Positions 923-20,595 of a stretch of 20,980 nt of DNA are shown one piece after another. The stretch is from Prasinococcaceae sp. CCMP 1430 (Eukaryota; Plantae; Prasinodermophyta). The notes beneath the pieces are model-generated. The model ran no database searches. It was not told the origin of the DNA and saw only the letters and a program-made list of their open reading frames with translations. Position 1 is the first letter of the stretch. Every line of letters begins with the position of its first letter. The translations under genes were made by a program, and so were the position numbers. The stretch covers positions 141,625-162,604 of the forward strand of contig RQSC01000012.1 of assembly GCA_013416795.1 (NCBI GenBank), read 5' to 3'.

Positions 923-1239
923 ATGGCGCGCGGCGCGGCAATGGCAACTGCTGCAGCGGCGAGGCATTTGGTGCGGGCGGCGGCGGGTGGGAGGGCGGCG
1001 AGCGCAGGCGGCGGAGGCACGCGCGCGAGCGCGAGCGCGTCGGCGTCGGCGTGGGCGTGGGGGCTGGCCAGCCCCTTCCCCGCGCTCAACGCCGCGCGGC
1101 GGGCGCACAACTTCAGCCCGGGGCCCGGCATGCTGCCCACGGCGGTCATGGAGCGAGCGCAGCGCGAGTTCATGGACTTTGCGGGCATGGGCATGGGCGT
1201 TATTGAGGTGAGGGACCGCATCGTGTGTCTCTGTTTGCC

Positions 1240-1296
<57 letters not shown>

Positions 1297-2521
1297 GTGC
1301 GTGTGCGTGCGTGCGTGTGCGTGCGTGTGTGTGTGTGCGTGTGTGCGTGTCTCTGTTTGTCTTTGTGTGTGTTCGTGCGTGCAAGTGTGTGTGTGTGTCG
1401 CTGACTCTTGCCCCTCCCCCCCAACTCCCTCGCGCGCTCGATTGATGCGCCGTCGCAAGGTGACCAACCTGGACGCGCTCGGCGCGTCCCATCCGGGCGT
1501 GGCCAAGCACCCCTTGCAGCAGATGATGCTCGACACCGAGCGCAAGCTGCGCGAGGCCCTCGACGTCCCCGAGAGCCACCGCGTGCTGTTCATGCACGGC
1601 GGCGCGGTGGGCCAGTTCTCGGCGGTGCCGCTCAACCTGCTCCCCGGCGGCGAGGCCGAGCCGGCCAGGGCCGACTACGTCCAAATGGGCTTCTGGACCC
1701 AGCGCGCCATGGCCGAGGCCGAGAAGTACTGCGACGTGCACGTGCCCGCCACCTTCGAGAAGGCCATCCTGCCCGTCAGCGAGTGGAGGGCGAACGTGCG
1801 CTCCGACGCGGCGTACGTCCACCTCTGCGCGAACGAGACCGTGCAGGGCATGGAGTACCACGACGACCCCGAGTGGGACGAGTCGCTCCCGCCGCTGGTG
1901 CTGGACGCCACGTCGACGCTGCTGAGCCGGCCGATGGACGTCGCGCGCTACGGCGTCGTCTACGCGAGCGGTGGCAAGAACCTGCCGGCCGGCGTCTGCG
2001 TGGTGATCGTGCGCGAGAGCCTGCTCAAGGAGCGCCAGGCCCACCCGCTGTGCCCCCAGATCATGGACTACCGCATGAACGGCGGCGGTCTGATGCCCTC
2101 GCCCAGCGTCTTCGAGTCGCGCCCCAACACGCCGCCGACCTTTGGGGTGTACATGCTCGGCCTCGTCTTGGACGACCTCAGGGACGCGAAGGGAGGCCTG
2201 CATGCGGTGCAGGAGTGGGTGACGGCGCGCGCGTCCCGCGTGTACGACGCCGTCGACAGCTCGGACGGCTATTACGTCAACACGGTCGACGCCTCGGCGC
2301 GCAGCAGGATGAACGTCGTGTTCAACATCGCGGGCGGCAAGGAGGTCGAGAGGCGCTTCGTCGCCGAGGCGGAGGCCGAGGGACTGTTCGCGCTCTTCGG
2401 ACATCCGATCGGCGGCGGCGTGCGCATCACGCTCTACAACGGCGTGCCCGACGCGGCGGTCGACGCCGTGATCGGCTTCATGCAGTCCTTCAAGGCTGCT
2501 AATAACTCGAGCGCCTCTTGA
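923..2521 (+). CDS. serC: Phosphoserine aminotransferase (SerC/PSAT)-like class V PLP aminotransferase, divergent active site, with transit-like N-terminus; exons 923-1207 and 1460-2521
   Basis: Family motifs [42 protein letters not shown] (PLP Lys), [22 protein letters not shown]. Intron GTGAGG(1208)...CGCAAG(1459) is filled with (TG)n and has CTGAC near 1402. Start is 923 or 941. The substrate may not be phosphoserine (see findings). Confidence 0.85.
1240..1397. repeat. (TG)n microsatellite inside the PSAT-like intron
   Basis: Imperfect TG/TGCG run, read directly. Confidence 0.95.
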
Positions 2522-2819: not shown

Positions 2820-4120
2820 CTAGCTGGGGGCAGAGCCGCGCCCGCCGCCGTCGCGGGCGGCCACAAGCCGCTCGCACTCAAAGACGTCGTAGCCGAAAGC
2901 GACAAAGTCGAGCAGAAAGCGTCGGGCGATCACCCCGCAGGCTTCCATGTCGTACAGGGCCGACCATTGCGAGTGGTCCGAGGTCACGCAATCGCCGTCC
3001 TTTCGGCAATGTCCCCCGATCGAGTTCGCGCGAGTTGCCGAAGCGTGGGCGAGCAGCTCGTGAACGGCCGCGTCGTCGGCGGGGGGGCGCCATATCGGCG
3101 CCCCAAACGGCGCAGTCGCCGTGGGCGCACGGGACTCGACCGAGCCGCGGAGCGCTGCCTCGCTCGCGTTGCAGGCGATCCACTCCAGTCCCTCTTTGGA
3201 CATCCAGACCGCCGTCGATTCGTGGTCCTCGAGGCGCACAATGTGCTTCACCGCCCACCGCTTCTGGCCGCAGTCTGTGAGCCAGTAGAGCTGGGAGGTG
3301 TCGCCGCACCCGTTGTCGCGGCACATCGCATCGCACGCATGGTTGAGCCTCGTACTGATGACATTCTTCCACATGAAGCGCGGTGACAAGCCCGTCGCAC
3401 GTCGTCTGTCGTGCTCCTTCACCCACTCGCTGAAGGTCAGGTTGGTGAGGCATCCTGGCCATTTCACCCCTCCTGGGTCTTCCTGGCCAGGCTCGTGTTC
3501 GCACAGCCAGCGACGAAAGTCGTACTGGGACACGGCCCAGCTGTACGGGTTGCGGACTGTCGCGAAGGTTTCGGCGGCCGAGTAGGCCTCCGGCGACCTG
3601 TGCGCCTGCTCTACGGCGGTGTAGTGGTTCTGCCCGTGACTCTGCCCGTCCTTCTCAACGAAATACGTGCGCTCCTTGAGCACCGTCGAGCTCCTGATCG
3701 CTTTGAGGACGCTGCAGGCGGGGGAGATGTCAGACAGTCAGATATGGAGTAGCAACGCGGAGGAGTGTGCGAAGACACAGCGTCGGGCTGCGTACATGCC
3801 CTGCCACCACGCGCCTCCGCAGGGTCTCGCCGCCAGCCCCTCCCTCCCTTGAGCGCCGCGCGCGCCGGCGCTCACCTCGTCCCGCCGGTCTTTGGTATGT
3901 GCACGAAGCCGAGCGTGCGACATTCAGAGGGGTCGGCCGCGGCCGCGCGTCCTTCGTGCGCGCGGGCTCTAAACACCCCCTCCGAATGCGACTCGCGCGC
4001 ACGCAAGCCACCCGCCACCCGCTGCGACACCGACTGCTCGGCCCTCGCCGGAAACGACAGCGCGAGCGCCGCGACCGCCAGTGCCAGCGCTGCGATCGGT
4101 GCCCGGGCCGCCGTCGCCAT
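2820..4120 (-). CDS. Sulfotransferase, Sulfotransfer_2 / carbohydrate-sulfotransferase-like, with N-terminal signal or anchor; exons 4120-3876 and 3711-2820
   Basis: Splicing GTGAG(3875)...CTGCAG(3712) joins FVHIPKTGGT to SVLKAIRSS, giving the 5'-PSB motif HIPKTGGTS. The 3'-PB motif is FATVRNPYSWAVSQY. The N-terminus MATAARAPIAALALAVAALALSFPARA is hydrophobic. Confidence 0.85.
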
Positions 4121-4597
4121 GATGCGGCGCCCTCCCACGCGAGGCTGCTCGCAGCCCCGCCAGCTGGCACGCGAGCGTGCCTCGCTCGCCACTGTCACTA
4201 CTCTTCTAATTGGCCGCGGCACCGCGGCGGCAGGCGCCGACGCCGACGCCGGCGCGAGGACGCCCGCGCACTGGTGGCGCGCTGTGCGGCGCGCGCCGTG
4301 CGACGCGCGCCGTGTGGCGTGGCGCGTGGCGTTGCCCGCCAGCCATCAGTCAGTGCGCATGGCAAATTCCTACGTCAAATCGCATTGCGAATCGATCGCG
4401 GCCGCGCGCGGAAAAAAAACAAAAAATTATCCCGGCGCCGCAGCAGAGCGGGGCGCGGGGCGTGCCACACCGCGCGGGGGCGCAGGCGCCCCGCGCCGCG
4501 CGGCAGAGTGCGAGGGAAGGTCGGAGGCGGACGCGGGGGCGGGGAGGCGGATACCTCGCCTGATGGGCATGCCTGCGCCGCGAGGGCGGCGGCGGCG

Positions 4598-6623
4598 ATG
4601 GACTTCAGAGGCGGGGCGGCGATGCCGCTCGCGGCAAGAATGGCTGCGGCGAGCGAGGGGGCGCGGTCGGTGCGACCGACGAGGCTTCTGCCGCGGGCGC
4701 CGGGCGCAGCGATGCGATCATCGGCCTCAAGGAGGGCGTCAGCAGCTGGATCCGCTCGCCGGCGACCGCGATCGGCGACCGCGGCCTGCGCTGGGACCAC
4801 TTCGGAGGATCACAGCGCCACCGAGGCCTCGTCGCTGACGCCCGAGCAGCAGAAGCGCCTGGACAAGCTGCTCGACCTCGGCGTGTCTGCGAGGAAGCTC
4901 GAGCAGCAAGACACGCAGGGGCGCCTGCTCAAGCAGAGCTTCGAGCACGCGACCATGCCTACTTTTCTGAAGCTCCAAGAGCTCGGCATCTCCGACAACG
5001 CCATCTGCAGCTACCCTGACCTGCTGTGGAGTGACTTCGAAAACAACACACTTCCAATGTTCAGGAAGCTCCGCAAGCTTGGTACGCCCATCCCCGCGCT
5101 CGCGCCCCGCTCCCCACACGAGCACTCTCCCGCTAGCAGTGCGCGCGAGCCCGTCCGGGGGCAGGTCGCGCGGCGCGCCGCCCCACGCTGCGCGTGCGAT
5201 GCCCCTGGCTCGCCGCTGACGCGATGCAACGCCGTCAATGCACTTTGCCTCCTTACGCACATGTGCGCATCCGTCTGCGCTCGGCTGCGTGTGCGCCGAT
5301 CGCAGGCATATCTGCGAAGGCGATCAGTGCGTATCCGGAACTGCTGCTGTATAACGTCGACGAGTCGACGGTGGAGACTTGCGAGAGGCTCTACACCCTG
5401 GGGTCAGTGACGTGCGCGCCGCGCATGCGCGCTCGCCGTCATGATGTGCCTCGCTGACTGACGTTCGTTGCCGCTGCCGCGCGCTCGCGGTCGTGCAGCC
5501 TGTCCGCGAGGACCCTTTGCGCCTTCCCCGAGCTCCTTTGGCGCAGCTATGAGGACGACATCCTACCATCGTATGAGAAGCTGCAGGTGCGCCGGGCGCG
5601 CGCGCGCGCGCACGCATGTGCGCGCGCGCACGCTCATTCGCACGCACGTGCACACACCCGGGTGCGCTAACACATGCGCCCGCGCGGCAGGATCTGGGCC
5701 TCACCTCGAAAGCCATCTCTTCGCATCCTCGCCTTCTCATGCACAGTTTCGAGGACGTCATCCTCCCATCCTTCGAAGCGCTGTCGTCTCTCGGCATGAC
5801 CCCGCAGGCAATCTGCTCGTTTCCGCTCTTGCTCGGGGCCGACTTTGACGAGAACATCCTGCCCACTTTCCACAAGCTCCGCGGCCTGGGCCTGTCAGCC
5901 AGGGCAATCTGCTCGAACCCGCCCTTGCTCTGGTACAGCTTCGAGGACAGCACCTTGCCCAATTTCGACAAGTTGCGTGGCTTGGGGCTGTCCGCCAGGG
6001 CCATCTGCGCGAATCCGAGGCTGCTGGGGACGGGCTTCGAGGCCAAGACGCTCGGGACCTTCGAGAAGCTCGAGGAGCTCGGCATACCCAAGAAGTCCAT
6101 CTGCGCCAAGCCGCAGCTTTTGCTGAGCAACTTCGAGCACGCCACGCTGCCGACCTACGCGAAGCTGCGCGCGGAGCTCAGAATCCCCGAGGACGCGATC
6201 TGCGCGCACCCCGCGCTTCTCCTGGCGAGCTTCGAGGAGGACCTGATGCCACGCTTTGACAGGCTCGTTGACGAGCTGGGCATTCCTGCGGCGACGGTGC
6301 GCCAGCAGCCCGACCTGCTCATTCGTAGCTACGAGACCCTCGAGGCAAACGTGCTGGCCATGCGCGCGTACGGCCTCCCCGACGGCCTCGCCACCAAGCG
6401 CAGCTTGCTCGCGGCCAACCCCGACAGGGTGGCCACCAACCTGCGCTTCCTGGGCGAGGTCGTCGGGCTCTCGCCGGAGCGCGTGAATCAGACCATGCTG
6501 CTGTGCAAGCCTTGGCAGCTGGAGGAGCAGTGGGAGCGCAACGCGGCGGGCCGGGACGCGAGCGGCATGGGCCAGGCGGAGAGGGCCAAGGCGCTCAGGG
6601 GCGCCAGTCGGCTCAGGCGCTAG
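4598..6623 (+). CDS. mTERF-like helical repeat protein, probably organelle-targeted; exons 4598-5081, 5306-5402, 5499-5586, 5691-6623
   Basis: About 12-13 tandem ~32-aa repeats (LGxSxxAICxxPxLLxxxFExxxLPxFxKL). Three GT-AG introns restore a continuous repeat register. The N-terminus is rich in Arg/Ser/Ala. Alternative starts are 4622 and 4640. Confidence 0.75.
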
Positions 6624-9855: not shown

Positions 9856-10165
9856 AAGCAGCGCAAATACTGCTGACCGACAAGTCAGGCGGTCACTGTT
9901 CATCAACACTGCTTCAATATGCTTCGTAGTGCCAATGGCGACGCACGCATCCCCCCTCGCCCTCGCCGTGCGTGTGGCCACCGCTGCGTCCGCTGGCATG
10001 CGCCACAGCACACGCACGCGCACGCGCACGCGCACCGCGCGCACCGGCACGCGTCGTCGCTGGCAATCGCCCCCTCGCGAACGTGTTCGTCGCTGCGGAG
10101 GAGCGGCACCTCGCGCGCCGCGGCGGCGCGGAAGACCNCGCGCCGCCTGCGAGGCTCGAGCGAGC

Positions 10166-11416
10166 ATGGCGGCAGTGTCGGCGGCGCGCCCGCAGCGCAG
10201 TACGAGCAGGCGCGGCGTCGCGGTGAGCGCACGCGACGGGACTCCTCGCGGCGACGCGCCCGCCCGCGTGCGCGCGGTGGGCAGCGATGCGAGCGTCGGG
10301 GTCGCCCGCCTGCGGCAGGTCGTCGACGCCTTCCCCCGCCGCGGCTACGTGCAGGAGCCCACGCCGGTGCAGGCGATGCCCCGCCTGCGCGAGCACTGCG
10401 CCCTCCACTCCCCCTCCTTGCTCGTGAAGCGCGACGACTTCCTGCCGCTGCTGGGCGGCGGGAACAAGACGAGGAAGCTGGACTACGTCGTCCAGGACGC
10501 CATGGACAAGGGCTGCGACGCGCTGGTGACCTCCGGCGCCGTGCAGTCCAACCACTGCCGGCTGACGGCCGCCGCGGCCGCGATGGAGGGCATGGACTGC
10601 CACCTGGTGGTGGAGGAGCGCGTGCCGAACTCGTACGCGGCGGCCGCCGGCGGCAACAACTACCTGTTCGGCCTGCTGGGCGTGCAGTCCATCCGGCACG
10701 TGGCGCTGGGCGAGACCGACGAGGCCGTCGAGGCGCTCTCCGATCGCCTCGAGGCGCTCGGCCTCGCGCCGTACGTGATCCCCGGCGGCGCGAGCAACGA
10801 CCTGGGCGCGCTGGGCTACTGCAGGATGGCCCTCGAGATCATTGACGAGCACGGCCTCGACGCCTTCGACGCCATCGTCGTGTGCTCCGGCAGCGGCGGC
10901 ACGCACACGGGCTTGCTCACGGGCCTCCGCGCCGCCGGCGACACCACGAAGGTCATCGGGGTCAGCGTGCGCGGCTCCGCGGACGCACAGGCCGCCAAGA
11001 TCCTCGCGATGTGCCACGCGCTGGAGGATGCGCGCTTCCGCGGCATCACCGACGACTCCGAGGACGGCTCCGACTCCGGGCAGGACGGCTCCGCGGGATC
11101 CTACCTCGTCGGACCAGAGGACGTCGTCGTCATCGACGACTACGTCGGCCCCGGCTACAGCCTCAACACCGAGGCCCAGGCGATAGCCATCCAGCTGTTC
11201 GCGCGCCGCGAGTCAATTCTGCTCGATCCTGTGTACACGGGCAAGACGGCGGCCTGCTTCCTGGACATCGCGAGGTCGGGGGAGTATGGCGCGGAGCAGA
11301 AGCTGCTCTTCGTGCATACCGGCGGCGCGCCCGCGCTGTACCACTACAAGACGACCGCCACCGAGTTCACGGGCGGGCGGGCCGAGATGGACCGCGTCAA
11401 GGACCCGGCCGCCTAG
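10166..11416 (+). CDS. D-cysteine desulfhydrase-family PLP enzyme (ACC deaminase / D-CDes / CuyA family), intronless, transit-like N-terminus
   Basis: Motifs KRDD, GGNKTRKL (PLP Lys), SGAVQSNHCR, SGSGGT, LLDPVYTGK, FVHTGG. Y-T and H-T, rather than the Y-E and H-L of true ACC deaminases, indicate the D-CDes side of the family. An in-frame ATG also exists at 9935 but is separated by N10138. Confidence 0.9.
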   Translation: MAAVSAARPQRSTSRRGVAVSARDGTPRGDAPARVRAVGSDASVGVARLRQVVDAFPRRGYVQEPTPVQAMPRLREHCALHSPSLLVKRDDFLPLLGGGNKTRKLDYVVQDAMDKGCDALVTSGAVQSNHCRLTAAAAAMEGMDCHLVVEERVPNSYAAAAGGNNYLFGLLGVQSIRHVALGETDEAVEALSDRLEALGLAPYVIPGGASNDLGALGYCRMALEIIDEHGLDAFDAIVVCSGSGGTHTGLLTGLRAAGDTTKVIGVSVRGSADAQAAKILAMCHALEDARFRGITDDSEDGSDSGQDGSAGSYLVGPEDVVVIDDYVGPGYSLNTEAQAIAIQLFARRESILLDPVYTGKTAACFLDIARSGEYGAEQKLLFVHTGGAPALYHYKTTATEFTGGRAEMDRVKDPAA

Positions 11417-11595: not shown

Positions 11596-12648
11596 CTAGA
11601 GCGCGTCGGGTGGGGTGTGCTGGCGCAGAAGCCCGACGACCCTACCGGCAACGTAGTTGTTTCTGTAATCGCCAACCCGCTCAGCGAGTTCGAGCGCTGT
11701 CTGCCCGTTTCTGGTGCGTGCGGACGCGTCCGCACCCGCCTCGAGCAGCAGACTGAGGCACTTGTAGCACATGGATTCAGCGGCGATGTGGATAGGAGCG
11801 CATCCGTAGCTATCTTTCTTGTCCTTGTCTGCGCCCGTCTCGAGCAGCAGACCGAGGCAGTCGGCGCGCGTGCTCTGAGCTGCGATGTGCAGAGGGGTGC
11901 GACCGTGGCCATTCGCCTTGTTCGTGTCGGCGCCGGCCTCGAGCAGCAGGCGGAGGCAGTCAGCATTGCCTTGGGCGATCGCAATGTGCACCGGAGCAGT
12001 GTATACACGCATCTCAGATCTCGTTGCCGTGTCTGGGTCTGCGCCGGCCTCGAGCAAAAGCCGAAGGCAGCTGGCGCTGCCATTTGAAGCCGCGTAGTAC
12101 ACAGGAGTGTTGCCATTCCTGCCTGCCCTGTCGTTGTCGGCGCCTGCATCGAGCAGCAGCCGAAGGCAGTCAGGCTTGTCATGCTTGGCTGCGGCGTGCA
12201 CAGCAGTCTCGCCATTTCTGTCCTCGCTGTCGCTGTTGGCGCCTGCATCGAGGAGCAGGCGAAGGCAGTCAGGGCGGTCATGCTTGGCGGCGGCGTGCAC
12301 CGGCGTATTGCCAATTCTGTCCGCTTTGTCGGCGTCGGCGCCCGCATCGAGCAAAAGCCGAAGGCAGGTAGGCCTGGGATGCCGAGCCGCGGCGTGCACA
12401 GCAGTCTCGCCGTTGCTGTTTGGCATCATGTCAGCGATGTGCTTGTCGGCACCCGCCGCAAGCAAGCGCCCCAAGAAGTCGGCGTGGCCGCTCTGAGCGG
12501 CGACGTGCACTGACATCCCGATCATGGCGTCGCGCTCCTCGCGCGCCTCGCGCACGGCCGCGGCGTTAACACCCAGCGCCTGCGTGGCCAGCAGCAGCGC
12601 CTGGCGCGCGGTCTCCGCCGACGCGCCCCCAGCGCCGGGCCCGCCCAT
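11596..12648 (-). CDS. Ankyrin repeat protein (about 8 repeats), intronless
   Basis: Repeated 33-aa units of the type G(E/N/R)T(A/P)(V/L)HxAAxxxxxxCLRLLLxAGADxD. The start is uncertain (ATG 12648, or the later MIGMS). Confidence 0.9.
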   Translation of the reverse strand: MGGPGAGGASAETARQALLLATQALGVNAAAVREAREERDAMIGMSVHVAAQSGHADFLGRLLAAGADKHIADMMPNSNGETAVHAAARHPRPTCLRLLLDAGADADKADRIGNTPVHAAAKHDRPDCLRLLLDAGANSDSEDRNGETAVHAAAKHDKPDCLRLLLDAGADNDRAGRNGNTPVYYAASNGSASCLRLLLEAGADPDTATRSEMRVYTAPVHIAIAQGNADCLRLLLEAGADTNKANGHGRTPLHIAAQSTRADCLGLLLETGADKDKKDSYGCAPIHIAAESMCYKCLSLLLEAGADASARTRNGQTALELAERVGDYRNNYVAGRVVGLLRQHTPPDAL

Positions 12649-12806
12649 CCCTTGCCCCGCGCCGCTGCCGCCGGCGCGCGCAGTGGCGCCCCGGCCGGCG
12701 CCTTTTTTCGCGCGCGTCGCGCGATCATGCAGGCGCCAGCCGGGGGCCTCGAAACGCAATGTCTTTTTGAGAACCAAAATGATACGTATAAATGCATTAA
12801 AACGCG

Positions 12807-13997: not shown

Positions 13998-15695
13998 TCA
14001 GTACGTTGCCGCGGCGCCCGCGCGGCGCACGCCGACGGGCATGGCGGCGGCGGATGCCATCTGCTGCTGGGGCACTGGCGGCGGCCCGTCCGCGTAGCCG
14101 ACGGCGTGGAGCCACCACGCCGGGTAGCCCGTTGAGTCGGCTGACTTGGGCAGCTCGTTCACCCAGCCGTCAGCGTACTTGAACATGAGCACGTCGGAGA
14201 GGCGCCACCACGCCTCGTTGGCCTTCTCCGCGTGCGCGCCGTAGACGTCGTCTACGCACGCCGCGAGCGCGCCCGAGCCCAGCGCGAGGCCCTTGCACTT
14301 CTGATCGGCGGCCTCCACGGCAGCGGCGCCGGCGACGGCCTCGAGTGCGTGCTGCGCGGCGGCGACGTCGCGAACCATGAACTTCCACTTGAGGTCCATG
14401 ATGTTGGACACGTACTTGGTGCCCCACGTCGCGGTCGTGCGGTCGAATTCGAGCGGGTTGCCATGCGAGTACGCGTGCGGCACCCGCGTCATGTGCGGCG
14501 AGAGCGGCACGAAGACGGTGCCGTGGGCAGCGCCCGGCGCGAACCACACCACTGGCCCCGCGGCGTCGCCAAGGTCGCCGCGAGAGACGCTCACGTAAGA
14601 GTCCGTCGTGCGATAGAGCGCGATGGAGCGCTCCCAGTTGCCGCTCACCTCCGCCTCGCCCGCGCCCTTGCCCACACCGGCGGCGATGCGGTTGGGCGAG
14701 CCGAAGGGGCCCGCCGCCAGGCCCTTCGTCATGTCGTACTCCGTGCCCTCGTAGTGGTCGCGCAGCACGTCCAGCACGTCCAGCACGCTCACCTTGGCGT
14801 CGGGCTTGAGGCTCACCGGGTAAGGACGGCTCTTGCGGTACTCGCCATACTCGCTCGGGAGGTCGACGCTCGGCGCGAGCAGGCGGTACGCGCCCCACAC
14901 GCGGCGGCCCGAGTAATACTTGTGCGCGTACTCGCCGTCCGAGTAAATGGCGGTGAAGTCGAGCTTCTTGCCCGACGACGGCGACCACCAGCCCTTCTCC
15001 TGCGCGACGGAGAACGCGCTGGCGGACGCCTGAAAGTTGTCCTCGTCGTCGGGGTCGACCTCGCGGATGATGAAGGCGTTGGCGACGACGGCGACCTCGC
15101 CGTCGGGCACGCGCTGCGCGGCCCAAATGGCCGACGTGCCCGTGGGGTCGGGCAGGATGTGAAAGATCCACGCCTCCTCGGTGTCGGACACCAGCAGCGA
15201 CTCGGCGGTGCCCTCGAACGAGCCCGCCCCGTAGAAGCCGTACTCCTCGGCGGCCGCGCCCATGAGGGCGACCGCGTCGCGCGCCTTGGCCGCCCGCTCC
15301 ATCGCGAGCTGCGTGAGCACGTCGACGCTCAGCAGCGCCTTGCCGCCCTGGCCCGCAGGAGAAGTGCCGAAGACCCCCGAGCACGTGCTCTCGGCGATGC
15401 CCAGCTGGTGCTCGTTGATGGCGCCGTACGTCTCCTCCAGGTACGCGTACGTGTGGCTCACCTCCGGGATGTGGCCGATGGGCTCCCACGCCGTCTGGTT
15501 GAGGTCGGCGCGCGGCGCGTACTCGGGCACGCCGCGCGCGTCGCCGGCGTAGCGCGGGTACGACTCGGGCGTGAAGAACACGGGCCGCATCGCCCCCGGC
15601 GCGTGGTCCGCCGCGGGCACCTTCACCAGCCGCGCGTCCGTCGGCGCCTCGCCGTCGTTCGTGTGCGCGACGTACACGCCGCCGTCCGCCGCATG
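13998..15695 (-). CDS. Peptidase C69 (dipeptidase/secernin-like Ntn hydrolase), 5'-truncated
   Basis: Motifs ADGGVYVAHTNDG, INEHQLGIAESTC, ERAAKARDAVALMG, EEYGFYG, WAAQRVPDGEV.VVANAF, YSGRRVWG, LRDHYEGT, WERSI and YPAWWL. The signal peptide and the N-terminal catalytic Cys are not found. Confidence 0.85.
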   Translation of the reverse strand, partial: HAADGGVYVAHTNDGEAPTDARLVKVPAADHAPGAMRPVFFTPESYPRYAGDARGVPEYAPRADLNQTAWEPIGHIPEVSHTYAYLEETYGAINEHQLGIAESTCSGVFGTSPAGQGGKALLSVDVLTQLAMERAAKARDAVALMGAAAEEYGFYGAGSFEGTAESLLVSDTEEAWIFHILPDPTGTSAIWAAQRVPDGEVAVVANAFIIREVDPDDEDNFQASASAFSVAQEKGWWSPSSGKKLDFTAIYSDGEYAHKYYSGRRVWGAYRLLAPSVDLPSEYGEYRKSRPYPVSLKPDAKVSVLDVLDVLRDHYEGTEYDMTKGLAAGPFGSPNRIAAGVGKGAGEAEVSGNWERSIALYRTTDSYVSVSRGDLGDAAGPVVWFAPGAAHGTVFVPLSPHMTRVPHAYSHGNPLEFDRTTATWGTKYVSNIMDLKWKFMVRDVAAAQHALEAVAGAAAVEAADQKCKGLALGSGALAACVDDVYGAHAEKANEAWWRLSDVLMFKYADGWVNELPKSADSTGYPAWWLHAVGYADGPPPVPQQQMASAAAMPVGVRRAGAAATY

Positions 15696-15878
15696 CCGCA
15701 CGTACTCTGCGATCGTGGCGCGTTTGACCTGTACAGTGAGTGCGAGCTGGTTTTGGACGCCTTCAAGAGCTGCGAGCGCGTGGTGTCCACGCCCATCCCT
15801 TACCAGTACCTGCACATGGTCAACTTTGTGACCTTCTGCTTCGTCTTCAGCGTTCCTTTCACCTTCTCGTACTCGTGG
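15693..15878 (+). CDS. Bestrophin (RFP-TM/YneE-like) anion channel fragment, truncated at both ends
   Basis: DRGAFDLYSECELVLDAFKSCERVVSTPIPYQYLHMVNFVTFCFVFSVPFTFSYSW matches the family signature CERIxxTPxPxxY followed by a TM helix ending in xPF. It stops at N15879. Confidence 0.75.
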
Positions 15879-16040
15879 NGCCGGCGCCCGCCCGCGCGGC
15901 AGCGCCGGCGCACTCGGCGAGCGCAGCCCCGGGAGCGCGGGCGCGCGCGCCGAGTGCTCCCGCTCGTTCTCCCGCCCGCAAGTGCTTTCGCCGCGATGCA
16001 GTCTTACGCGCGCGCGCGCGCATGCGCGCGGACCGGCCGC

Positions 16041-17233
16041 CTACTTGTTGGCCTCCGCCTCGATCGCCGCCTGGTGCTCCTTGAGCGCCTTGTCGGTGGC
16101 CCCCGCGCCCAGCATGTCGTACATGATCTCACCGTCGTCGTCCTTGCGCAGCGTCGCGATCTCCACCTTCTCGTGGTTGAGTGTGGTGGAGTCCATGGTC
16201 TTGGCGAGCACCTTGATCGCCAGCTTGGTGGCCGCCTCGAGGTCCATCTCGGGGTCGTAGTCGGTCTTGAGGATCGACTGGGAGCTCTGCGAGTTGGCGC
16301 CAATCGCCGTGGCCTTCCAGCCGCCAAAGTTGCCGCTCGGATCGCTCTGGTACAGCTGGAAGCCGTGGTGGTCGTCGTAGCCGGCGAACAGGAACGACAC
16401 GCCGAATGGGCGCAGGCCGCCGTACTGCGTGTACCCCTGCTTGCGATCGCAGATGCTCTGCACCAGCTGCTCCACGGGCATCGCCTCCTGGTATTGGAAG
16501 CGGTATCGCTGCGACGCAAGCCTGCAGTCGTTGATGAGAATGTTTGCGTCGGCGGTGAGGCCCGCGACCGCGCACGCCACGTGCTCGTCGATGCGGTACA
16601 TCTTCTCGGCGGTCTTGGCGGTCTCGAGCAGCTTGGAGGTGATCTTCTTCTCGGCGGCGAGCACGATGCTGTGCGGGCACACACAAGGGACGGGCGGGTG
16701 AAAGATGGGCGCGGGGTGCGCACGCGGTGATCGCATCCGTCATCGCGGAAGCACCGCGCGGCGTGAAGCCACCAGCGCCAAGCAGCAGCGTTTTCAGGAG
16801 CAGCAGCAGCAGCGGCGGCAGGTCGCTACGTGTCAGCGCACGCGCCGCGTCTGCCCGCACTACCAATTTGCACTGCTCGGCTCTGTTCGAGCGCCCGAAC
16901 CCCGCTGCGCACGGGAGGGCTCGCTCGGCATCACAACGCGCTCGCCCATGCCTGGAGCACGCGCGAGAACGACGGCTGGGCCAGCCAGGGCGCGCCAGCG
17001 GTAGCTGGTGTCGCATGCCGCAGAGCTCCGCACAGATCCCTTCGCGTGGAGCGCGCTTCGGGCGCCGCAGCGCCGCCGGCGCGGCTGTGCGCACGGCGGC
17101 GCACGCACCCGTCCTTGGCGTGGATGCCTACGCACGACCCCGCGTTGGAGATCGCCTCCATGGCGTACTCTACCTGGTACAGCCGCCCCTCGGGCGAGAA
17201 GATGGTCGTGCGCGAGTCATAGCGGCGCGCCAT
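16041..17233 (-). CDS. PSMA4: 20S proteasome subunit alpha-3 (alpha type-4); exons 17233-17109 and 16668-16041
   Basis: [28 protein letters not shown], spliced via GTGCGT(17108)...GCACAG(16669) to [14 protein letters not shown], then [46 protein letters not shown]. Confidence 0.97.
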
Positions 17234-18745: not shown

Positions 18746-18814
18746 CGCGTGTGCACGCGCACGGGCACAGCCGGTCGCAGTCCTCCACCTCGCTTTCCTT
18801 ACTCTCGCGGCCGC

Positions 18815-19132
18815 TCACTCCTCGTCGTCTCCCGCGCCGTCGTCGCTGTCGCGCCGCCGCGTGTCGCCCTCCGCTGCCTCGGCGGGGGCGGCGCCGTCAC
18901 CGTCTCCCTCCGCGGCGGGCGCCTCCTTGGCCTCCTCGGCGGCCTCGGCGGCCCCCTCCGCGGCCCCGTCGGGCGCCTCGTCGCCGGCGGCGGCCTTGCC
19001 CGCGCCCTCCCTCTCCCTGCGCCGCTCCTGCCGCTCCCTGCGCTCGCGCTGCCGCTTCTCCTTCAGCTCCTTGGCGCGCTCCGACAGCTCGGGCCGGCGC
19101 TCCACGCCGTCCCAGTGCTTGCTCGCGACAAC
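18815..19132 (-). CDS. Terminal exon of an unidentified protein (charged helix plus acidic Ala/Glu/Asp tail); upstream exons are in or beyond the gap
   Basis: Acceptor CGCTCAG (19133) follows a microsatellite intron, then VVASKHWDGVERRPELSERAKELKEKRQRERRERQERR...GDDEE*. The reading phase is assumed. Confidence 0.55.
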   Translation of the reverse strand, partial: VVASKHWDGVERRPELSERAKELKEKRQRERRERQERRREREGAGKAAAGDEAPDGAAEGAAEAAEEAKEAPAAEGDGDGAAPAEAAEGDTRRRDSDDGAGDDEE

Positions 19133-19164
19133 CTGAGCGAGATGGCGGAGCGAGCAGGCGCGCA

Positions 19165-19165
<1 letters not shown>

Positions 19166-19255
<90 letters not shown>

Positions 19256-20236
19256 NNNNNNNNNNNNNNNNNNNNNNNNNNNNNNNNNNNNNNNNNNNNN
19301 NNNNNNNNNNNNNNNNNNNNNNNNNNNNNNNNNNNNNNNNNNNNNNNNNNNNNNNNNNNNNNNNNNNNNNNNNNNNNNNNNNNNNNNNNNNNNNNNNNNN
19401 NNNNNNNNNNNNNNNNNNNNNNNNNNNNNNNNNNNNNNNNNNNNNNNNNNNNNNNNNNNNNNNNNNNNNNNNNNNNNNNNNNNNNNNNNNNNNNNNNNNN
19501 NNNNNNNNNNNNNNNNNNNNNNNNNNNNNNNNNNNNNNNNNNNNNNNNNNNNNNNNNNNNNNNNNNNNNNNNNNNNNNNNNNNNNNNNNNNNNNNNNNNN
19601 NNNNNNNNNNNNNNNNNNNNNNNNNNNNNNNNNNNNNNNNNNNNNNNNNNNNNNNNNNNNNNNNNNNNNNNNNNNNNNNNNNNNNNNNNNNNNNNNNNNN
19701 NNNNNNNNNNNNNNNNNNNNNNNNNNNNNNNNNNNNNNNNNNNNNNNNNNNNNNNNNNNNNNNNNNNNNNNNNNNNNNNNNNNNNNNNNNNNNNNNNNNN
19801 NNNNNNNNNNNNNNNNNNNNNNNNNNNNNNNNNNNNNNNNNNNNNNNNNNNNNNNNNNNNNNNNNNNNNNNNNNNNNNNNNNNNNNNNNNNNNNNNNNNN
19901 NNNNNNNNNNNNNNNNNNNNNNNNNNNNNNNNNNNNNNNNNNNNNNNNNNNNNNNNNNNNNNNNNNNNNNNNNNNNNNNNNNNNNNNNNNNNNNNNNNNN
20001 NNNNNNNNNNNNNNNNNNNNNNNNNNNNNNNNNNNNNNNNNNNNNNNNNNNNNNNNNNNNNNNNNNNNNNNNNNNNNNNNNNNNNNNNNNNNNNNNNNNN
20101 NNNNNNNNNNNNNNNNNNNNNNNNNNNNNNNNNNNNNNNNNNNNNNNNNNNNNNNNNNNNNNNNNNNNNNNNNNNNNNNNNNNNNNNNNNNNNNNNNNNN
20201 NNNNNNNNNNNNNNNNNNNNNCACACACACACACAC

Positions 20237-20317
<81 letters not shown>

Positions 20318-20416
20318 CACACACACCACACACCACACACCGCACACCGCACACCACACACACACACCACACACACACCACACACCGCACACACGCACAC
20401 ACACACACGCACACAC
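19166..20416. repeat. (TG)n tract (19166-19255) and (CA)n tract (20222-20416) flanking an assembly gap
   Basis: Read directly. Confidence 0.9.
19256..20221. other. Assembly gap (966 N)
   Basis: Run of N. Confidence 1.
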
Positions 20417-20452
20417 GCAGGCACGCGCGTGCGCTGTCGCCCTCGCCGATCG

Positions 20453-20533
20453 CCCTAACTTCGGCCGCCGAGGCGCCGCGGAACTTCCAAGGCTTTTTCA
20501 TATACGACTACTAACCCTATCATGTACCCTAAT
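20453..20533. promoter_or_regulatory. Three telo-box-like CCCTA(A) motifs
   Basis: CCCTAA (20453-58), TAACCCTAT (20512-20) and CCCTAA (20528-33) in an AT-richer island upstream of the minus-strand gene. Confidence 0.35.
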
Positions 20534-20595
20534 GTAGGCGCATCACCCGAAACCTCCTTTGCCGCCCCTTGTAATTATATGGGTGTGACGCGCCA

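Follow-up and report, generated by a model that had tools for sequence, protein, structure and literature searches.

The window analyzed here, a stretch of 20,980 nucleotides from the genome of the marine green alga Prasinococcaceae sp. CCMP 1430 with a GC content of 66-72%, carries near its start a two-exon gene on the plus strand (923-2521) that codes for an aminotransferase with the SerC/phosphoserine aminotransferase (PSAT) fold and an N-terminal presequence. Exon 1 (923..1207) provides the start codon, an Ala/Arg/Ser/Gly-rich presequence of about 55-60 residues and the conserved PSAT N-terminus (...GMGVIE); positions 2-38 of the NCBIfam profile NF003764 match residues 59-95 of the exon 1 protein. 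Exon 2 (1460..2521) contains 353 codons and a TGA stop and encodes most of the aminotransferase. Between them lies a GT..AG intron of 252 nt (1208..1459), which is by accident in frame in the assembly, and an open reading frame of 596 uninterrupted codons (731-2521) spans the gene and reads through it. Inspection of the DNA located a phase-0 splice donor (GAG/GTGAGG) after position 1207 and an acceptor (CGCAAG/GTG) before position 1460. The intron is almost wholly a (GT)n and GC-interrupted (GT)n microsatellite, and kindred CA/GT tracts are found at 860-900 and 1-700. Because this microsatellite intron is in frame, prokaryote-style gene callers read through it or start at an ATG inside it, as happened with protein P0001. 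The two exons were searched separately, and residue numbers given below follow exon 2.

The joint between 1207 and 1460, with the 252 nt skipped, is present in transcript contigs that two separate studies obtained from the source organism, while the intron is retained in a DNA run. These transcript contigs show 0 differing letters from the window DNA over positions 990-2684, exon 1 being covered from 990 to 1205. Six environmental contigs (from TARA and other marine assemblies) encode P0001, which is 99% identical. Compared with the assembly, the wild TARA contigs of this species lack 22 nt of the intron, which excludes a coding role for it. The presequence shows in-frame indels between strains, and the mature part is identical between them. 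The GC content is 0.70 in the coding sequence and 0.59 in the intron, and GC at third codon positions (GC3) of the coding sequence amounts to 0.935, in agreement with the strongly G/C-ending codons described in the initial annotation. The gene is thus an expressed nuclear gene of this alga, and its product is predicted to be an organelle-targeted alpha-aminotransferase of the SerC/PSAT fold that depends on pyridoxal phosphate (PLP).

Membership in the SerC/PSAT family (class V aminotransferases, fold type I) is not in doubt. Exon 2 matches PF00266 with an E value of 5e-27, and solved PSATs in the PDB match it with E values down to 7e-69. Exon 2 alone scores 298.6 bits on NF003764 (3-phosphoserine/phosphohydroxythreonine transaminase), above the cut-off of 253, but fails the strict equivalog models TIGR01364 (serC_1; 289 bits, cut-off 443.6) and NF009112 (237 bits, cut-off 563). 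The AlphaFold model of P0003, a full-length relative with 71% identity, has a pLDDT of 93.5 and a pTM of 0.92, with values of about 89-95 in the insertion regions discussed below (pLDDT); all top PDB matches found by Foldseek with this model are PSATs, with a TM score of about 0.9. A feature search in the ESM Atlas returned only generic bacterial PSAT clusters.

In structures of Arabidopsis PSAT1 (AtPSAT1), two His-Arg pairs grip the phosphoserine phosphate, H396/R397 from the gate-keeping loop and H110*/R111* from the partner subunit (asterisks), and R403 binds the substrate carboxylate (PMC6043687). The PLP ligands are K265, D241, T221, W171, Q264 and N306*/T307*; a hydrogen bond links Q264 to the PLP phosphate, the Asn-Thr of the NTPP motif binds the PLP phosphate of the other subunit, and AtPSAT1 Thr146, which corresponds to E. 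coli Arg77, sits beside the PLP phosphate and the substrate site (PMC6043687). For comparison with these residues a column table was compiled from an alignment of 169 relatives, which fall into three groups: the canonical PSATs (clade C), clade B, and clade A, which contains the window protein. The PLP core is kept in all of them, with W79, T127 (in NET), D149, K173-N174 and N223-T224 (in NTPP) being 100% conserved in each clade. The same applies to the alpha-carboxylate Arg322 in GGVRITLYN, the equivalent of AtPSAT1 R403 and E. coli R335. The initial annotation had called the PLP core and the carboxylate-binding Arg intact, and the alignment bears this out.

The distal site, where the canonical enzymes hold the phosphate, is different. 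The first His-Arg pair (AtPSAT1 H110/R111, E. coli H41/R42) is absent from the window protein and T-N-L (1463..1471) stands in its place, EVTNLD aligning without a gap to EMSHRD. In the ungapped rows of clade A, T and N are 100% conserved and the third position is always L or I (motif ExTN[LI]D), whereas B and C have SHR (EMSHRDxGGP and EMSHRGK, respectively). The motif is followed by a loop of nine residues, A-S-H-P-G-V-A-K-H (1484..1510), that is specific for clade A; its columns are 100% gapped in B and C. Within clade A the His of this loop is invariant and is followed by Pro (about 87%) and Gly (about 96%). A wild TARA allele of the same species has SHAG instead of SHPG (CCG to GCG), so the Pro is not essential. 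The SHP of this loop had initially been taken for the altered first phosphate-binding motif. There is indeed no Arg at either of the two canonical positions; however, SHP is not a mutated SHR, the true equivalent of which is T-N-L. A point-mutated SHR is ruled out by the gap-free alignment of T-N-L, by the clade-specific insertion and by the SHAG allele.

The second His-Arg pair (AtPSAT1 H396/R397) is broken. In the gate-keeping loop of the window protein (2396..2425), His315 is kept, the following Arg is replaced by Pro316, the Lys before Gly-His is replaced by Phe313, and Arg322 is retained. The loop reads FGHP in clade A, F[GC]HP in clade B and KGHRSVGGMRASIYN in clade C, where R or K occupies the column of Pro316 and Lys that of Phe313 (100% each). 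Pro316 is present in 90% of clade A and 91% of clade B. Both Arg residues are gone, as had been noted, but the loss of the second is not peculiar to this gene: about 91% of clade B, a much larger protist group, combines GHP with an unaltered SHR.

There are further changes. Val50 (1607..1609) takes the place of E. coli Arg77 and AtPSAT1 Thr146. In this column clade A has Val (97%), clade B has His (95%) and clade C has T, R, S or N; Trp239, invariant in clade C, is lost in both A and B. Around the Schiff-base Lys173 (S-G-G-K-N-L-P-A, 1967..1990), the canonical GAQKNIGPAG is [SG]GKNLGPAG in clade B and GGKN[LIV]-P in clade A, with a deletion of one residue after KNL. The AQKNIGPAG of canonical PSATs has thus become GGKNL-PAG in the window protein, and the Gly at the position of the PLP-phosphate ligand Gln (AtPSAT1 Q264) is the exception to the otherwise retained PLP machinery. 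The loop leading into NTPP (2090..2137) contains eight residues (positions 211-214 and 219-222) that canonical PSATs lack, compared with three extra in clade B and none in clade C. In clade A these include the motif S-x-F-E-S-x-P, with S220 and P222 at 100%, E219 at 77% and R or K at position 221 in 67%. All three indels fall on active-site loops, one of them with a conserved Glu-Ser. The change of GHR to GHP, the altered catalytic-Lys motif and the roughly eight residues inserted before NTPP had all been pointed out in the initial annotation and were confirmed by the alignment.

Every predicted side-chain ligand of the distal anion site is accordingly replaced in the clade-A alignment (SHR by TNL, KGHR by FGHP, and the Thr or Arg at the position of Arg77 by Val). 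Compared with canonical PSATs (EC 2.6.1.52; E. coli 1BJN, AtPSAT1 6CZX-6CZZ, human 8A5V), to which it is about 35-45% identical, the window enzyme has the same fold (TM about 0.9 for the clade-A model), the same PLP ligands (Lys, Asp, Thr, Trp and the Asn-Thr of the partner) and the same alpha-carboxylate Arg, and its NTPP loop implies a dimeric active site. The canonical enzymes differ in having SHR, KGHR, a Gln before the catalytic Lys and Trp239 (His or Asp in the clade) where the window protein has TNL, FGHP, Gly and a substituted residue, and they lack the clade-A indels, namely the 9-residue insertion, the 1-residue deletion after KNL and the 8 residues before NTPP.

The window protein contains all signature motifs of clade A: E-x-T-N-[LI]-D, the x-H-P-G loop, Val50, GGKN[LIV]-P, S-x-F-E-S-x-P-N-T-P-P and F-G-H-P. 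Phylogenetic analyses placed it inside a monophyletic clade A (support 99 in FastTree, SH-aLRT 100 in IQ-TREE); A and B together are split from the canonical clade C with a support of 100, and A is nested among the B lineages. The nearest relatives are found in clade B, with 45-52% identity (Micromonas pusilla C1N1Y0 / XP_003062196, Porphyra umbilicalis OSX74903, Myrmecia bisecta KAK9824500). Clades A and B have in common [SG]GKN, FGHP (FCHP in some B), the loss of Trp239 and Lys313, an insertion of three residues before NTPP, and fusions to dehydrogenases of the same subfamily. In contrast to clade A, clade B keeps S-H-R-D, has an invariant His50, and shows neither the HPG loop nor the FES-x-P insertion nor the deletion of one residue; its extra residues before NTPP number three in all, against eight in clade A.

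Profile scores follow the same division. On the NCBIfam models canonical controls reach 510-580 bits, clade B 330-392 and clade A 286-329, with A and B passing the lenient NF003764. On TIGR01364 the members of A and B score 286-392 bits (full-length clade-A proteins 286-318), below the cut-off of 443.6, and canonical controls 527-544; full-length clade-A proteins obtain 224-238 bits on NF009112 (cut-off 563). Named members of clade A are Chromera velia, the ciliate Pseudocohnilembus persalinus, the amoebozoan Vermistella antarctica, Telonema subtile and the alga studied here, joined by sequences from marine metagenomes (n=30 in the clade-A column table). Clade B includes the genera Micromonas, Chloroparvula, Myrmecia, Porphyra, Gracilaria, Hildenbrandia, Rhizamoeba, Rigifila, Stygamoeba, Aplanochytrium, Bolidomonas and Eutreptiella. 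The remodelled phosphate site, as read from these alignments, is thus a clade signature across distant eukaryotes and not private to the genome of this alga. Chance falls far short of explaining the pattern, which is shared within the clade by 30 or more sequences drawn from several eukaryotic supergroups. The named members of A and B carry homology-based names only, the databases calling them "phosphoserine aminotransferase", and in the literature (full text) we found no paper on this clade, on PSAT-like enzymes without the Arg pairs, on fusions of SerC to 3-hydroxyisobutyrate dehydrogenase (HIBADH) or on a Prasinoderma PSAT.

With this distribution at hand, an artefact can be considered, in which Arg was turned into Pro by a sequencing error or in which the gene is a decaying serC copy. 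Both highlighted changes could be single base changes (CGG to CCG), microsatellites surround the gene, and the window contains an assembly gap. However, the same codons are present in the transcript contigs of the two studies and in the six environmental contigs, the frame is intact with the high GC3 given above, and the same residues are kept in at least 30 homologues across supergroups. The chance of an artefact is therefore negligible; transcripts, wild contigs and clade conservation rule out a sequencing or assembly error, RNA editing and a pseudogene. In the transcript contigs of both studies, which match the DNA letter for letter, the His-Arg motifs are not restored. Spliced transcripts identical to the DNA, the codon composition, the invariant core and the conservation across distant eukaryotes support a real, expressed and functional gene and not a decaying serC, as had been proposed initially.

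What the enzyme acts on has to be read from its altered site. In canonical PSATs the distal anion site binds the phosphate of phosphoserine and also the gamma-carboxylate of glutamate. In clade A this site is predicted to be lined by Asn, Leu, Val, Ala150, Phe and Pro together with the new His loop and the Glu-Ser loop, so a dianionic phosphate ester looks disfavoured. We infer a non-phosphorylated substrate from the loss of the phosphate ligands and from the conserved Glu in the new FES loop; the window enzyme thus likely uses a substrate other than phosphoserine. It would retain ping-pong transamination on a pair of alpha-amino and 2-oxo acids, the side chain of which would no longer be a phosphate ester.

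A second line of evidence comes from gene fusions. At its N-terminus the clade-A protein P0009 carries the C-terminal 60 residues of an NAD_binding_11 domain, and a search with it retrieved full-length fusions of PF03446, PF14833 and PF00266 (P0144, P0145, P0147, P0149 and P0150, 704-753 amino acids) as well as P0146. Seven fusion proteins from three lineages are now at hand, five in clade B (P0144, P0145, P0147, P0149, P0150) and two in clade A (P0009, P0146), and in the tree their aminotransferase domains branch at two points within B and one within A. A contig of 2373 nt (L013) carries one uninterrupted fusion frame of 719 codons, and P0150 was called as a single frame of 736 residues on a contig of 15.5 kb. 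Another locus (L014) encodes the dehydrogenase and an A-like aminotransferase with a one-base frame slip after NTPP, the remainder (FGHP...R) following in the next frame; this slip, at about 2460-2540, may be an assembly error of the Logan contig or a real lesion.

The fused dehydrogenase is a distinct subgroup of the HIBADH family with the motifs LD[AC]GVAGGP, GAGHAVKSVNN and HVLSxxFDFGF..DLM.KD. It is nearest to the models for tartronate-semialdehyde reductase and HIBADH but scores far under their cut-offs, and its best PDB match is the HIBADH of T. thermophilus (E 7.5e-60). The Thermus enzyme accepts 3-hydroxyisobutyrate and serine. Stand-alone orthologues of this FDFGF-type dehydrogenase with presequences also exist. 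The stand-alone proteins P0207-P0219 form a coherent eukaryotic HIBADH-type subfamily with the HVLSxxFDFGF motif, in which Ala replaces the substrate-binding Ser of the family (VAGGP versus VSGG). At the loci of stand-alone dehydrogenase orthologues no adjacency of dehydrogenase and aminotransferase genes was found, and the gene directly upstream of that for P0008 (clade A) does not encode a dehydrogenase. The presence of fusions in both A and B suggests a two-step conversion between hydroxy acid, oxo acid and amino acid; because fusion is recurrent, A and B would act directly after (or before) a hydroxy-acid dehydrogenase.

Combining the two lines of evidence, we propose that the clade-A enzyme is a transaminase for a substrate with a non-phosphate side chain and works in tandem with the HIBADH-type beta-hydroxyacid dehydrogenase (LD[AC]GVAGGP, HVLSxxFDFGF) on a route from hydroxy acid via oxo acid to amino acid. 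The best guess for its chemistry would be a non-phosphorylated C3 route connecting serine, hydroxypyruvate and glycerate (or tartronate semialdehyde), which would be the phosphate-free counterpart of the pair formed by 3-phosphoglycerate dehydrogenase (PGDH) and PSAT. In its favour are the C3-C4 3-hydroxy acids and L-serine used by characterised HIBADH-family enzymes (PMC3642240), and the oomycete PGDH-PSAT fusion described below, where a dehydrogenase likewise precedes a SerC-type domain. Taken as a whole, this proposal comes close to an even chance of being correct without quite reaching it.

Several points weigh against it. HIBADH-type enzymes normally turn a 3-hydroxyl into an aldehyde and not into the 2-oxo acid of an alpha-transaminase, so the two steps do not couple in an obvious way. 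Clade B shares the dehydrogenase partner yet keeps SHR and the invariant His50, and may still bind an anion. The window protein has a presequence at its N-terminus and no dehydrogenase domain, the fusion being seen only in relatives: the gene of the alga is unfused, and no dehydrogenase gene lies within the window. Finally, exon 2 by itself passes NF003764, an 'equivalog' model for PSAT, and possible anion ligands are kept or gained in clade A, namely His315, the new invariant His11, Arg or Lys at position 82 (97%) and Arg or Lys at position 221 (67%), which makes a rebuilt phosphate site conceivable.

These last two points lead to the view that the enzyme is still the PSAT of the cell. Here the phosphate would be held by a rebuilt site (His11, His315, Arg82, Arg221 and backbone amides), A and B would be divergent but isofunctional, and the role of 3-phosphoglycerate dehydrogenase would fall to the fused, non-homologous enzyme. 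The passed NF003764 cut-off, the PSAT fold and the retention of all catalytic residues agree with this, as does a known precedent for the domain order. In the PGDH-PSAT of oomycetes and brown algae (P. infestans PITG_00133) a dehydrogenase is likewise fused N-terminally to a SerC-type aminotransferase and the two catalyze consecutive steps; that protein, however, combines a D-2-hydroxyacid dehydrogenase (PGDH) with a plastid-type PSAT domain (bioRxiv 10.64898/2026.07.27.741032), whereas the dehydrogenase of the A and B fusions is of the HIBADH type (PF03446 and PF14833). Nor did a canonical serC of this alga come to light, in an analysis that could not search the rest of its genome, and the alga would need a PSAT if it had no other. 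On the other hand, only one His remains of the four canonical phosphate ligands, Lys313 is lost, a conserved Glu (E219) is inserted beside the NTPP loop of the active site, and the cut-offs of TIGR01364 and NF009112 are missed by more than 100 bits. In addition, other green algae (Micromonas, Myrmecia, Chloroparvula) carry B, and stramenopiles have B plus the plastid-type PGDH-PSAT. This distribution suggests, as an argument at the level of lineages, that A and B are extra paralogues and not the housekeeping enzyme. We regard a retained PSAT function as unlikely, though it deserves to be taken seriously.

A broader version of the two-enzyme proposal includes both clades. The A and B aminotransferases and the FDFGF dehydrogenases might constitute an undescribed pathway of two enzymes, found largely in marine protists, that interconverts a small hydroxy acid and a non-phosphorylated amino acid; clade A would be specialised further, for a substrate side chain that is non-anionic or a sulfonate. 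Candidates would be the phosphate-free serine/glycerate route or a metabolism of cysteate and sulfopyruvate feeding the abundant algal C3 sulfonates. We put this forward tentatively, as an idea that could well fail.

The sulfonate candidate can be formulated for the window enzyme itself, which would then be an L-cysteate : 2-oxo-acid aminotransferase (cysteate <-> 3-sulfopyruvate), its phosphate site being retuned for a singly charged sulfonate in algal metabolism of C3 sulfonates (cysteate, sulfolactate, 2,3-dihydroxypropane-1-sulfonate (DHPS)). Cysteate and sulfopyruvate are closely analogous to phosphoserine and phosphohydroxypyruvate, and the named taxa and metagenome matches are mostly marine. 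A precedent exists in SlcC, the (S)-sulfolactate dehydrogenase of Chromohalobacter salexigens, which groups with SerA and uses a sulfonate analogue as substrate (PMC6303947). It offers an analogy for a shift in a SerC paralogue, but it is a bacterial dehydrogenase of another enzyme class without sequence relation to the gene studied here. SlcC is SerA-like and not of the HIBADH type (PMC6303947).

The window itself adds two genes to this discussion. An open reading frame of 495 codons on the plus strand (9929-11413), 7.4 kb downstream, encodes a PALP-fold PLP enzyme whose best NCBIfam match is the D-cysteate sulfo-lyase CuyA, with 353 bits, about 100 bits more than for D-cysteine desulfhydrase (245) but below the CuyA cut-off of 450; its best PDB match is a D-cysteine desulfhydrase (E 4e-64). 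The CuyA match falls in two stretches, which probably reflects an intron. This frame may hint at cysteate metabolism in the alga. The adjacent minus-strand gene (2820-4222), arranged tail-to-tail with the aminotransferase gene, is weakly sulfotransferase-like (Sulfotransfer_2, E 0.01). By eye, its PKTGGT and RNPYSWAVSQY motifs are typical of sulfotransferases, and the gene as such is also conserved in TARA contigs of this species. These neighbours are the sole support specific to the sulfonate idea, and it is weak. Gene order, however, says little in eukaryotes, and the window gene has no neighbour in common with four other clade-A loci. Moreover, clade A has fewer cationic residues than a sulfonate site would need, the partner dehydrogenase is outside the known sulfolactate dehydrogenase families, and no paper was found in the literature that ties SerC-like enzymes to algal sulfonates. 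A cysteate aminotransferase thus appears rather improbable.

The identity of the fused partner also allows a different reading, namely that the aminotransferase aminates the aldehyde produced by the dehydrogenase. The dehydrogenase would make malonate or methylmalonate semialdehyde out of 3-hydroxypropionate or 3-hydroxyisobutyrate, and the aminotransferase would turn these aldehydes into beta-alanine or 3-aminoisobutyrate. In favour of this, the fused dehydrogenase resembles HIBADH and has an HIBADH as its best PDB match, and the simplest use of a direct fusion is an aminotransferase that takes up the product of the dehydrogenase. Known beta-alanine and beta-aminoisobutyrate transaminases are, however, class III enzymes. 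Characterised members of the HIBADH family use C3-C4 3-hydroxy acids and L-serine, semialdehydes being their usual products (PMC3642240). Enzymes of the SerC fold, in contrast, are alpha-aminotransferases; Arg322, which binds the alpha-carboxylate, is invariant, as is Trp79, and nothing in the sequence indicates omega-amine chemistry, which makes this reading very doubtful.

Whichever substrate applies, the features of the protein and its relatives give a well-supported picture of a known kind of enzyme in a newly described form: a conserved and expressed subclade of the SerC family with a predicted rebuilt substrate site and a putative dehydrogenase partner of the Rosetta-stone type. Should clade A, and perhaps B, act on a different substrate, reconstructions of the serine pathway in many algae and protists would be wrong at the PSAT step, and a dehydrogenase-transaminase pair that is widespread in marine microbes would be without an assigned role. 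Small organic acids, amino acids and sulfonates are given off by marine protists in large quantities, and a new pathway that makes or consumes them would be of importance for carbon and sulfur cycling in the ocean. The clade would also represent a natural experiment in which the dual-substrate anion site of a PLP enzyme (for phosphate and gamma-carboxylate) was rebuilt while the catalytic core stayed frozen.

We also looked at the surroundings of the gene. A gene cluster conserved at clade-A genes was considered and rejected, as four other loci (L007-L010) are without a common neighbour. Two neighbours with an Amino_oxidase domain proved not to be related, one being phytoene-desaturase-like (by eye) and the other polyamine-oxidase/LSD-like (PDB search). 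At the far end of the window an assembly gap (N run, 19257-20221) is flanked by (GT)n on one side and (CA)n on the other, and because of this gap the open reading frames called across 18749-20537 are artefacts. A Peptidase_C69 frame on the minus strand (14001-15815, E 5e-43) overlaps an opposite-strand frame (14232-16727, plus strand) that has only a faint bestrophin-like match and is probably spurious or only partly real. The remaining genes, an mTERF-domain gene on the plus strand (5616-6620) and a gene with seven ankyrin repeats on the minus strand (11599-12777), are ordinary.

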